Part shown: in pieces, positions 1,901-6,400 of the stretch
Numbering within the stretch: the first letter of the stretch is position 1
How the letters are laid out: each line of letters opens with the position of its first letter
NCBI RefSeq assembly: GCF_006345805.1
Contig: NC_042997.1
Location: 168,516,001-168,580,000 of the forward strand
Source of the DNA: Octopus sinensis
Taxonomy: Eukaryota
Direction of reading: 5' to 3'
DNA length: 64,000 bases
The notes under the pieces: generated by a model
Told to the model about the DNA's origin: nothing
Database searches by the model: none
Seen by the model: the letters and a program-made list of their open reading frames with translations, nothing else
Position numbers and translations under genes: made by a program

Positions 1901-3429
1901 AATAACTTATGCTATCTGCTCTGGCTCTCTGTAGTCTGAGTTCAAATCTAGCCAAAGTCATCTTTGCTTTTCAGCCTTTTGGGGTTTTATAATATATAAT
2001 GCCACACCAAGTGGTAGACAGACAGAATTGTTAGAGCATCAAATGAGATGTCTTGTAGTGTTTATTCCAGCTAGTTAAGTTCTTAGTTCTTGAATGGTAG
2101 ATTTAATATGTCATTTGGTTTAATACCACACCTGGTGTTTGGGTACCTTTAACAAATTTGATTCTGTTGCAAGCATTCAGGTCAGCTCTCCAGTTTGGGA
2201 ATAACTTTGGCCATCAAAAATAAAGAATCATGGATACTGTTTGTCCCACCTTGACTAAACAGTAATGATAAAATAAAATTTTAAAATAATTAAAACAAAA
2301 AAATTCTTCCAGCACCCTTTCTGGCCATTTTGATGGCTATTTATGATTTTAAACAAAGGTGTTCATTCAATTAGCATTGTTTGTAAATGAAAAATAAAGT
2401 AAAAAAGACATATGTTGATATTTAAAAGTATTTACTCAACTACTAAAATAATGAGTGGATTAACGTTTGTGAAGTTAAGGGAGTAAATTGTTGATCACAT
2501 GCACATAAGTTCAAACTTTAAGTGTTACAGTCTCTGTGCCATGATCCTGCACAAGAAACATAACTCTGTTAGTCTTACTGTTGGTAGGGTCCACTTTCAC
2601 CTGGACACTTGAGATGTTAGTAGTGGGACCAGCATTTTTAACATAACATAACATAACAAAAAAAATACCCAATTCTAAAAAGAAAAACAAAAAGTTATTC
2701 GCCTGTGCAAAATCGGGTTGAAAAATACATTGATATAGTTTGCAGTTGAGTGAAAGGATTTATAAAAATACAATGCTTTCTTTCTCTGTCAAACGTCCAT
2801 ATATGCAATTATACTGACAGTTGCTGACATACTTGTATTTTTTTTATTTCATAGAATATGTTTTACATTCAAGTATTTTTCTATTTTATTATCAAGATTT
2901 TATCATGCTACAATGAAACTAAAAACTCAAGTATAGGCTTATTTTGATCAGACACACATATACACACAGATAAACAGGCCTTATTATATTTTAAAGGATG
3001 GACAAACTGAATGTTGTGATGAATTCATGCCTTTCTCAATTGAAGTGATAGCATAAGTCTAAAGAAACAACCTCAAATAATTACTGGTATTGTGTAGCAA
3101 ACTAGGTTTGCTGGAAGCGTGCCTTCTGCCCTATGCAGTAGCTACAAACAGAAAAAAACATATTTAAACTATATTTTGTAAACTGTTCATCATCTTTCTT
3201 GTAGTTTGATTAATTTAATTTGGGGTTAGAAATAAGGAGAGTCTCAATACATCTTTTTGAATTATTACATATACATATATATATTGGTTTAACAATGTAT
3301 TGCTGTTGCCATTGTCACCATCAGCAGTATCATCAAAATAAGGAATCATCAGGATATATATGTAACAATCTCTGGAGCTTCATATTGTTAATATTATCAT
3401 CATTATTAATGTTGGAAATTTTCTTTCTG

Positions 3430-3443
3430 TTAAGCTTCACATT
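3430..3443 (-). CDS. Terminal coding exon: (E)CEA-stop
   Basis: Strong acceptor tttctttctctttgacag after a 128-nt intron; supplies the last conserved beta-tail Cys, then TAA at 3432-3430. Confidence 0.72.
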
Positions 3444-6400
3444 CTGTCAAAGAGAAAGAAATATTTTTAGTAATAACTGACTAATAATGTACACACTCAC
3501 AGCAACACACACACACACACACACATACACATACTCTCTCTCTCACACAAAGTTCTAACAAAAATTGTTACCTTTCCTGCGAATGACATAGGTTTTCATT
3601 TTATTATTTGGACGTTGTTCAAGGGCAAACCTTACTTTACAGTCATCATAATCATCAATAAATAAACACAGATGTCTTGTCTTTTTTGTGTATATATCAT
3701 CTACAATATAAAAGCCATATTAATTCTGTTAAATAAATTATAGACAATATTATTTGTCAACAATAATAACAAAAAATGAATGACTTAACAATCAAAATAT
3801 GATAAAAATTCCTATCCCTCTATTAGAAAAATAGTCTCACATATAATCCTTGTCTTTATCTTTTACTTGTTTTAGTCATTGGACTGCAACCATGCTGAGG
3901 CATCACCTTAAAGTGTTTTGGTTGAATGAATCAATCCCAGTACTTAAGCCTATTTTCATAAACAGTGCAATTATGTGAAATAATGCAGAAGCATATTTGT
4001 AGCAATACTAAACCTGTTTTGATGATGAGCATTCAGTTGTTTGATCAACAGAACTACCTACTTGTTAAATTAACATGTAAGTGGCTGAGTATTCCACAGA
4101 CATGTGTACTCTTAAAGTAATGGTGTGATGCAATATACAAGGATGGACCTCTCTATTACAGGTACATTCTATATGACAGTCTTCCAGTTGGTCTCTGTCT
4201 ACCGAATTTCACTCAGGATGCATAGATTACTCTGAGGATATGGTAAAAAAACACTTGTCTAAGAGGTGACCCTGTAAGGTTGAACCAGAGGTCACATGAT
4301 TGGGAAGAGAACTTCTTAACAATTCAGCTATGACTGTATCTACTGAAAATATATCTTCTTTTGTATGATAATCTATGATATTTCCCATTGCTATATATAG
4401 CTTCATCTGTCTCCTCAAATTTCCTCAAGGTTACTTGATACATATTACAATTGCTATCATTTGTGACAATAATTCAATGTATCTAAGCATTAATTTATTC
4501 AAACATGTTTTCATAGATCCATTTAAATAAGCAACTCACCCAAACTGTCAACTAAGTGGATTGGGGCACACTTTATACATTGTTCAAATGTTAGAGTACC
4601 AGTGCCAAAGACCTTGCATAAAACACATTGTTTCATCCTCTCACACTTGTTGACACATGTCTGAAGCAGAAAGCATGAATAATTTTAAATAATTTAGAAT
4701 TTATATTGTCAGTAGAAAAAAATAAACAAACAAGCAAGAAACACATGCACCAAAGTGAAGAAGTTATATGAAAATAGGTTGCAATGAAACAGAAAGGATC
4801 AGCTCATGAAAAAACAGAAAATAGCACTATTGAAATCAATATAATTTGTTAGATAATGATCAATCAGAAGTGAGAAAATATACCTGGTTGCATTATGATG
4901 TGAAAGACAATGCATAATACAGGTAATCTTTTATCCTGTGTTAACTCAACTTTGAGAATGAAATTAGAGTAATGTAGATTTCTTTTTCCATTTTGTATAT
5001 TTGTTTATGTAACATAAACCTTATGTAACATATTTTATCTTTACTTGTTTCAGTCATATATATATATATATGTGTGTGTGTATATATGTGTGTATATATA
5101 TATATATATATATATATATATATATATATATATATATATATATTTATATGTGTGTGTGTGTGCATGTATATATATATATATATATATTTGATTATTATTT
5201 GACTATTATTGTTATTATTGTTGACCTGAGGAGTGACTATACTTTTAAATTGAATTGTTTTTCAATCAAATTTAAATTTAATTGCAATTCAAATTTAAAT
5301 TATAGCCCTGAAACGTATGTGGTCTTTTTACTTATTATATATTGTTTATTCCTTTTTTGTGACCTATTTATATGTTTTATAATATATTTTATTTTTCCTC
5401 TATGATTTGGTTTATGTCTATCATTGTTTGAATTACATAATAGTGGTTTCTCTAATTTATATATATATATATATATATATATACATACATATATGATGGG
5501 CTTCTTTTAGTTTCTGTCTACCAAATCCACTCACAAGGCTTTGGTTGGCCCAAAGCTATAGTAGAAGACACTTGCTCAAGGTGCTACACAGTGGTACTGA
5601 ACCTGGAACCATGTAGTTGGGAAGCAAGCTTCTTACCACACAGCCATACTGGCTATTTTATTTGAAAAATATTTTATGTGAAAATTGTCTCTCCAAAAAA
5701 GAGGTGGTACTTCATTTTAAAATACTTACACATCTCTCAAATTAAGGGGAAAAAATGTCATTAACAAAACACTGGTCATGACATATTCAAAATCACCTTA
5801 TATTTAAATATATATTATTAATATGAAAATAAGTTTCTTTTGTGAAGTTGTCAGAATGCAACTGTAGTTATAAATAATAGTTTCAAATTTTGGCACAGGG
5901 CAAGCAGTTTTTGAGGGGAAGGGGAAGATGATTACATTGACCCTAATACTTGACTGGTATTTATTTTATCAATCTCGAAAGGATGAAAGGCAAAGTTGAC
6001 CTCGGTAGAATTTGAGCTCAGAACGTAAAGACATTTTTTCCTGCTCTCTACCTTATTGTAGTCATAAATAATAGCTCATAAAATACTGAGTAATAAAATA
6101 ATTTAGACAGAAAAAAAAGAGAGTTATTATATGGAAGATAAACTACACATCAGTACTGTTGATGGATGGGATACCATACACCAAAGTAGCTCTCTGACTT
6201 TTAGCCATTCAAATCAGAAGCTTTCATTTTACAAGCAAAACAGAAGTTTGTTCACATTTAGATCATGAGCTAGAAGCATTGAGAAATGCAAAACAGTTGT
6301 CTCTTTTCTGAAACAAAACAGTTGTCTCTTTTCTTAAAAGCAAGTTATTATTTATATATATTTGTATTTGAGTAACTTCATAGAAGTACCTTGTTTTCAT

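Follow-up and report, generated by a model that had tools for sequence, protein, structure and literature searches.

An Octopus sinensis gene for a probable secreted integrin-β-like leg protein with a coding remnant in place of the transmembrane exon

The locus and its terminal exon

The stretch of Octopus sinensis DNA analysed here (the window) is 64,000 nucleotides (nt) long and corresponds to positions 168516001–168580000 of NC_042997.1 (C1 of the 2.72-Gb assembly). Direct reading of the sequence places an integrin-β-like gene on its minus strand. The left part of the window very probably holds the 3′ end of a genuine, conserved gene for a secreted protein of 976 amino acids (aa) that consists of the integrin-β leg only, with a 14-nt coding remnant in place of the transmembrane (TM) exon. 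The gene has 37 exons spread over approximately 100 kb, and the remnant, referred to below as the mini-exon, is the last of them (Table 1). Positions are given on the scale of the window, also where they fall outside it, and a slash marks a splice junction.

The terminal acceptor reads tttctttctctttgacag/AA TGT GAA GCT TAA and the protein ends ...VIRRK-E-C-E-A, with the stop codon three codons past the last ectodomain cysteine of the integrin-β-like protein. An initial annotation of the window had described β-tail exon 2 as ending in G/gt, followed by a 128-nt intron and AA TGT GAA GCT TAA; rereading and the rebuilt gene model match this to the base. It had also described the cysteines as complete through the β-tail, including the last, and from CPTC onwards all ten cysteines do align with those of human β3. 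After the TAA there are nine more stops in the same frame, so that read-through or editing would not help; read-through of the TAA and adenosine-to-inosine recoding were both ruled out on account of these downstream stops. A scan of the sequence beyond the stop found candidate polyadenylation (poly(A)) signals, ATTAAA starting at 3219 and AATAAA at 2890 and 2848.

Within the putative 3′ untranslated region (UTR) there is a hydrophobic run, FLILMILLMVTMATAIHC, at 3292–3345 on the minus strand and in the frame of the coding sequence. It was considered as a relic of a TM helix and rejected, as it lies behind the nine stops in ATG/CTG-rich low-complexity DNA and is missing from the Argonauta 3′ UTR. 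The run was judged to be a product of chance.

Minus-strand open frames rich in cysteine recur across the window in a regular pattern. Twenty-eight exons were modelled by hand; AG and GT are found at every boundary, the phases are consistent, and the joined exons give one open frame of 760 aa that ends in ...VIRRKECEA. A further nine exons, which encode the N-terminal part, are located beyond the right edge of the window, as far as position 103049. The introns of the gene are up to approximately 11 kb long. The repeat unit consists of five exons (38, 70, 82, 110 and 87 nt) with 20 cysteines, and encodes I-EGF2-, I-EGF3- and I-EGF4-like modules. It is present five times, with a protein identity among the copies of 40–65%. 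In the sequence, two of the three modules in each triplet are without the C1–C5 disulfide.

The smallest exon of the unit is easily missed. The phases of successive d and a exons are mismatched, which predicted a missing exon of 3n+2 nt with one cysteine. A tblastx comparison among the four d-to-a introns was swamped by transposon matches. A scan constrained by AG...GT, phase and cysteine recovered a 38-nt exon with one cysteine in all four introns; three are the e exons of Table 1 and the fourth is found at 66469–66506, outside the window. The gene of O. bimaculoides has been split into two records, XP_014791255.1 and XP_014791256.1. The break coincides exactly with the expected place of the first 38-nt exon, and the end of XP_014791255.1 reads into the intron (...CERREVCT).

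Table 1. Features of the integrin-β-like gene, in window coordinates.
Feature	Position	Strand	Remarks
Probable 3′ UTR	2885..3429	-	putative extent
Terminal coding mini-exon	3430..3443	-	AA TGT GAA GCT TAA = (E)-C-E-A-stop; stop 3432-3430
128-nt intron	3444..3571	-	gtaaca...ttgacag; polypyrimidine tract before acceptor
β-tail exon 2	3572..3700	-	43 residues + G; end ...CGC AGG AAA G/gtaaca, phase 1
β-tail exon 1	4540..4660	-	40 residues + G
Exon d4	6534..6620	-	last I-EGF4-like module; end ...CEDCP
Exon c4	13057..13166	-	gene model
Exon b4	14710..14788	-	gene model
Exon a4	16486..16552	-	gene model
Exon e3	27194..27231	-	38 nt; 12 residues + GG
Exon d3	27745..27828	-	gene model
Exon c3	33710..33819	-	gene model
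Exon b3	35716..35797	-	gene model
Exon a3	38406..38475	-	gene model
Exon e2	42015..42052	-	38 nt
Exon d2	43312..43398	-	gene model
Exon c2	44454..44563	-	gene model
Exon b2	45692..45773	-	gene model
Exon a2	48112..48181	-	gene model
Exon e1	53890..53927	-	38 nt
Exon d1	54714..54800	-	gene model
Exon c1	58971..59080	-	gene model
Exon b1	60963..61044	-	gene model
Exon a1	63672..63741	-	first exon inside window
Fourteen exons outside window, upstream	66469 to 103049	-	signal peptide, PSI, hybrid, I-EGF1, repeat unit 0

Domain architecture

The encoded protein begins with a signal peptide and continues with a PSI domain, a hybrid domain without the β-I insert, I-EGF1, five I-EGF2-3-4 triplets and a β-tail, giving approximately 16 I-EGF modules in total. 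The order PSI, hybrid, I-EGF and β-tail is that of a canonical integrin β subunit. The C-terminal 122 aa can be aligned over their full length with I-EGF4 and the β-tail of human β3 (residues 567–687, E 3.7e-14), an alignment in which the cysteine of the DDC motif corresponds to C663 and the final cysteine to C687. A Pfam scan of the whole protein gives EGF_integrin (E 6e-56) and misses the β-tail and PSI domains; when the pieces are scanned alone, both are recovered above the cut-off, the C-terminal 89 aa as Integrin_B_tail (48.2 bits, cut-off 33.6) and the N-terminus as PSI_integrin (38.6 bits, cut-off 27).

The β-I domain (PF00362) is absent from the protein, and none of its 26 matches in a six-frame scan of the genome lies near C1:168.5 Mb. 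Residues 29–246 align contiguously with residues 10–222 of 2P26 (E 1e-16), the best match in the PDB for the first 246 aa, and full integrin β chains match the N-terminus as two pieces flanking β-I. The structures 2P26, 5E6W and 5E6V are engineered β2 fragments of the PSI, hybrid and I-EGF domains, and in 2P26 the I-like domain has been removed, as in the octopus N-terminus. Whereas these are laboratory constructs, the octopus protein is encoded by a natural gene, and it has a β-tail and a much longer stalk. The initial annotation had proposed a long-stalk protein without a TM segment; this stands, with the refinement that β-I has gone as well, so the product is a leg and not a truncated receptor. 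With neither ligand binding through a metal-ion-dependent adhesion site (MIDAS) nor signalling through a cytoplasmic tail, it cannot act as a receptor.

At the N-terminus, the sequence MSNQMNFCLLLICLFAYNVAG/NDC (here the slash marks the end of the putative signal peptide) has a hydrophobic core and is signal-like. The C-terminus, RRKECEA, is charged and has no hydrophobic run, which argues against a glycosylphosphatidylinositol (GPI) signal. As the N-terminus is signal-like and the charged C-terminus is without a hydrophobic or GPI-type tail, we strongly infer that the predicted product is secreted and not anchored in the membrane. An AlphaFold2 model has a mean predicted local distance difference test (pLDDT) score of 56 overall and 63–87 over the last 90 residues; it was used only for a Foldseek sanity check, and not for distances or disulfides. 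The Foldseek matches were integrin-β chains throughout.

Homology with the transmembrane exon and the search for an anchor

Four canonical integrin-β paralogues are found in O. sinensis, at C1:92.1 Mb, C1:146.1 Mb, C15:34.5 Mb and C28:5.9 Mb. Their TM exons open with ...cag/CC TGT, /AT TGT, /CT TGC and /AA TGC, compared with ...gacag/AA TGT in the window. All four start in phase 1, with two bases that complete the codon before the last ectodomain cysteine, as in the mini-exon. This shared phase-1 junction identifies the mini-exon as the positional homologue of the TM exon, and it extends to O. sinensis the junction that the initial annotation had given for vertebrate genes. On this comparison the mini-exon is a TM-exon homologue cut down to supply the cysteine of the last disulfide. 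The earlier description of it as a TM-exon homologue with a clean stop is supported both by the junctions of the paralogues and by the conservation of a TM-less end in four mollusc classes, described below.

The genome was also searched for an anchor. In a six-frame scan Integrin_b_cyt (PF08725) matched only at the four paralogues, none of them less than 22 Mb from the locus. A tblastn search with the TM exons of all four paralogues and with two cytoplasmic exons covered 264 kb, comprising the window and 100 kb on either side; the best match had an E value of 0.17, and all matches were of low complexity. As a positive control, the TM and cytoplasmic queries of the paralogues detect each other at E values of 1e-7 to 1e-17. 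The absence of a TM segment or NPxY motif after the stop, noted initially for positions 1–3429, therefore holds with nine in-frame stops and an empty search over 264 kb. The sequence to the left of position 1, which had been named as a possible site of an alternative TM exon, contains none within 100 kb by tblastn and by the genome-wide Integrin_b_cyt scan.

The long open frames in the 100 kb downstream of the gene (−100000 to 0) are mostly derived from transposons, and no next cellular gene was identified there. They include a LINE-like (long interspersed nuclear element) endonuclease/reverse transcriptase (approximately −98269 to −95454), and two other frames, −6993 to −5676 and −48598 to −49659, resemble transposases. 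Elsewhere in the genome, a fifth integrin-β-like gene at C8:77225878–77248958 has β-I and β-tail matches and no Integrin_b_cyt match in the genome scan. A β-I match at C10213:46630–47081 is full of stops and is possibly a pseudogene.

Conservation and selection

The ending of the gene was compared with those of three other molluscan genes. In O. sinensis the 128-nt intron is followed by gacag/AA TGT GAA GCT TAA (ECEA). The corresponding intron in Argonauta hians is approximately 150 nt long and leads to ttttacag/AA TGT AAC CCT AAT GGC TAT TAT TAG (ECNPNGYY); in Haliotis rubra it measures approximately 0.9 kb and precedes cctgttacag/TG TGC CCG TGA (MCP); and in the chiton Liolophura sinensis it measures approximately 0.33 kb and precedes cacctgtag/TA TTT GCA GGA CGC TGA (VFAGR). 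The phase-1 junction followed by a stop within 2–7 codons is thus shared by A. hians, H. rubra and L. sinensis, so that octopod, abalone and chiton genes alike keep the junction and the immediate stop on which the initial annotation rested. This conserved ending is more than chance. An AATAAA soon follows the stop in Argonauta, and unrelated genes are found within 3–8 kb past the end in the abalone and the chiton.

In the chiton the cysteine codon is TTT and the partner cysteine has gone too; the pair is also missing from a clam protein and from the Logan-derived relative P0005. This joint loss of the last cysteine and its partner fits a stub that exists to close one disulfide.

Identity between the O. 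sinensis protein and that of Argonauta is 65%. Of 132 cysteines 131 are conserved, and the two differences are located in the signal peptide. Against O. vulgaris there are 8 synonymous and 4 non-synonymous differences over 2283 nt. These sequence comparisons indicate that the locus is a functional, conserved gene under purifying selection and not a relic.

Leg-only relatives

Relatives without β-I and without a cytoplasmic tail are found in Liolophura (XP_064617978.1), Solemya (KAL5018522.1), a firefly (KAF5292607.1) and a moth (XP_047995298.1), and in two abalones, as the 'integrin beta-like protein 1' of Haliotis rubra (537 aa) and the 'integrin beta-PS-like isoform X2' of H. asinina (522 aa). 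They share with the octopus protein a signal peptide, PSI, a hybrid domain without β-I, I-EGF modules and a β-tail, and end at or just past the last cysteine. The firefly protein ends exactly at that cysteine (...ETNLQC) and the moth protein shortly after it (...QQCPTKVR). Among the molluscan genes compared, the terminal mini-exon at the phase-1 junction is found in O. sinensis, Argonauta, Haliotis rubra and Liolophura. The leg-only form is not confined to cephalopods, as similar proteins without β-I and tail also occur in other molluscs, insects and nematodes. What was found in cephalopods only (Octopus, Argonauta and a cuttlefish fragment) is the five-fold expansion of the EGF triplet; the leg-only relatives in other molluscs and insects have 4–6 EGF modules, compared with approximately 16 in the octopus.

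Other arrangements are seen further afield. A Trichinella protein and the Logan-derived relative P0281 combine PSI, hybrid and EGF domains with a hydrophobic end. In Penaeus japonicus and P. vannamei, two or three modules, each made of integrin EGF repeats and a complete β-tail ending ...ECPP, are arranged in tandem, and in one of these shrimp proteins they are joined to further cysteine-rich domains, under the annotation MEGF10-like. The integrin stalk has been reused in another manner here.

A tree was built on the PSI/hybrid and I-EGF4/β-tail columns, with vertebrate ITGBL1 not among its rows. Octopods and abalones group together at a support of 86/75. The five leg-only rows with PSI and hybrid domains fall on one side of a branch that has a support of only 75/12, and the branches are long.

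Database records

RefSeq and GenBank already contain the sequence under misleading names, and it is not a new one. The O. sinensis records XP_029637747.1 and XP_036362697.1 are named 'tenascin-X isoform X2' and 'X1', respectively, and the O. vulgaris record CAI9716324.1 is named 'integrin beta pat-3'. A Pfam scan of the octopus protein found neither of the tenascin-X hallmarks, namely fibronectin type III repeats and a C-terminal fibrinogen-like globe. Only families of EGF type were returned, joined by PSI_integrin and Integrin_B_tail once the EGF stretch was removed, and the name tenascin-X was rejected as unsupported by domain content. Relatives in O. bimaculoides, Haliotis and Ruditapes carry the NCBI name 'integrin beta-like protein 1', and these names are the result of automatic best-hit transfer. 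Corrections follow for the names tenascin-X, integrin beta pat-3 and integrin beta-2-like, and for the one split gene model.

The database models for O. sinensis, O. vulgaris and O. bimaculoides all end in ...RRKECEA, and the hand-built model is identical to XP_029637747.1 except for one valine. This site lies outside the window at 78533 (C1:168594533), where RefSeq, O. vulgaris and O. bimaculoides have SPDVMKTNRY. The O. sinensis assembly reads CCAGAT/gtaaat, which under canonical splicing gives SPD-MKTNRY, and O. vulgaris has CCAGATGTT/gtaaat. The donor is thus GAT GTT/gtaaat in O. vulgaris and GAT/gtaaat in O. sinensis, 3 nt fewer, a difference that is either an indel or an assembly error.

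A literature search found no publication on a leg-only family in molluscs or cephalopods; the matches for a bivalve 'integrin beta-like protein' were integrins that contain β-I. When the C-terminal 298 aa were searched against a database for transcript-derived fragments, nothing was returned, such fragments being hidden within the 976-aa cluster.

Interpretation and alternative explanations

The gene is best understood as a receptor chain turned into a stand-alone leg. At the splice position of the TM exon, the 14-nt coding remnant would provide the final cysteine only, followed by a stop, and this cysteine would be the partner of the DDC cysteine, as in the C663–C687 pair of β3. A soluble product, as initially proposed, agrees with the conserved TM-less end, with the lack of a TM or NPxY exon within 100 kb downstream and with the predicted secretion. 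We infer that the protein would form a long rod, since 16 EGF modules amount to four times the normal stalk. This long, disulfide-rigid extracellular rod might bind other extracellular proteins via its EGF and leg surfaces. By analogy with ITGBL1, the only analogue that has been studied, which has been reported to inhibit integrin activity (PMC8921176), a rod that binds proteins in this way and possibly damps integrin activity can be suggested tentatively as the likeliest mode of action.

Several points weigh against this interpretation. The evidence for expression, for the splice between 3572 and 3443 and for the poly(A) site consists of database gene models and conservation across species, and that for secretion of sequence features. 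The structural model is poor overall (mean pLDDT 56). The proposed function is an analogy to ITGBL1, whose domain set differs, and the binding partner of a leg without β-I is uncertain. Finally, the search for a distant alternative exon extended up to 100 kb downstream.

The comparison with canonical integrin β subunits, represented by human β3 and β1 and the octopus paralogues, shows both what was kept and what was lost. The PSI-hybrid-I-EGF-β-tail order, the cysteine framework of I-EGF4 and the β-tail, and the exon junction before the last cysteine are common to all. The octopus protein differs in having neither β-I with its MIDAS nor a TM helix with an NPxY tail, and in a stalk extended from 4 to approximately 16 EGF modules.

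A closer resemblance in overall form is to vertebrate ITGBL1 (TIED), and the octopus gene could simply be its orthologue, a known gene with a known function. Both proteins are stand-alone integrin-β stalks, that of the octopus predicted to be secreted as ITGBL1 is, with a signal peptide and multiplied I-EGF repeats, and both are without β-I, TM and cytoplasmic regions. The name 'integrin beta-like protein 1' given to the relatives in O. bimaculoides, Haliotis and Ruditapes points the same way, but, as noted above, it was transferred automatically from best hits. ITGBL1 is described as a secreted protein consisting of a signal peptide and ten EGF-like repeats only (PMC7563769), whereas the octopus protein retains PSI, the hybrid domain minus β-I, and a complete β-tail in which the terminal disulfide is kept. 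Its approximately 16 EGF modules arise from five EGF2-3-4 triplets, a unit in which two of the three modules are without the C1–C5 disulfide, and it ends in a truncated TM exon. Orthology with ITGBL1 is therefore unlikely, and the initial description of the octopus protein as distinct from ITGBL1 is borne out by its PSI, hybrid and β-tail domains.

It is less likely again that the protein, although it has no TM helix itself, stays bound to the cell surface, for instance as a dominant-negative β subunit whose leg pairs with an integrin α subunit or another membrane protein. In solved integrins the leg domains of β run along the legs of the α subunit, and the octopus protein keeps all the leg domains, including the membrane-proximal β-tail, with their disulfides. 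Some of the nematode and Logan relatives also have a hydrophobic tail. Nevertheless, the main α–β interface is that between β-I and the β-propeller, and β-I is missing here; a leg of 16 EGF modules would far exceed any α leg; and no anchoring signal is present in the octopod, abalone or chiton proteins.

The persistence of a membrane-anchored form, with the mini-exon as a minor alternative and a main isoform that joins 3572 to a TM or cytoplasmic exon farther away or unassembled, is very unlikely. Cephalopod introns can be very long, those of this gene reach approximately 11 kb, and the search spanned 100 kb downstream. Set against this, there is no Integrin_b_cyt match within 22 Mb, and no sequence resembling a TM exon was found in 264 kb, although the paralogues detect each other readily (E 1e-7 to 1e-17). 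The immediate stop is kept in Argonauta, abalone and chiton, and in the latter two unrelated genes are encountered within 3–8 kb. The gene models of three Octopus species concur, perhaps not independently, and without β-I an anchored form would not be a functional receptor subunit in any case.

A decaying duplicate of an integrin-β gene might be suspected from the loss of both β-I and the TM/cytoplasmic region and from the failure of the full-length Pfam scan to detect the β-tail, but this is effectively refuted by 37 intact exons out of 37 with canonical splice sites on the 28 modelled, an open frame kept in four octopod species, conservation of every cysteine of the mature protein at 65% overall identity, the 8 synonymous against 4 non-synonymous differences from O. 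vulgaris, and an architecture kept across mollusc classes and in insects.

The reading of the locus as a gene for a secreted integrin-β leg has several consequences. If expressed as predicted, the protein is a natural version of the leg constructs without β-I that structural biologists have built to study the bending of integrins. The gene would also document, in concrete genomic terms, how a receptor chain can become a secreted stalk: the head insert was lost, and of the TM exon only 14 coding bases were left, which still serve to close the last disulfide. It offers a handle on the role of stand-alone integrin stalks such as ITGBL1, and on what the β leg binds by itself. More speculatively, and with slightly less confidence than the rod function suggested above, the leg-only proteins may form a conserved protostome family of secreted integrin-β legs without head or tail, in which the β-I insert was deleted and the TM exon truncated to a cysteine-donating stub. 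Such proteins might regulate integrin conformation from outside the cell or serve as rigid rods in the matrix, the cephalopod rod being lengthened four-fold by triplicating EGF2-3-4 units, and the family might be the invertebrate counterpart of ITGBL1 or a model for its origin.

Other sequences in the introns

Three further features of the introns were observed. On the minus strand at 10746–11066, in the intron between c4 and d4, there is a 107-aa open frame with a CX2C...H...C spacing like that of retroviral zinc knuckles (CMACGGRH..., CFHCGNTRH...); it gave no Pfam match at E 0.01. The intron between c3 and d3 contains a tandem duplication of approximately 905 bp at 29331–31092, with 98–100% identity and microrepeats of 12 and 8 nt rich in TG/CA, which either arose recently or is an artefact of the assembly. 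Finally, a short interspersed repeat with a 29-residue translation is found at 33941–34030, 24204–24290, 13289–13378 (minus strand) and 12096–12182 (plus strand), and occurs in many copies and in both orientations, the flanks of the window included.

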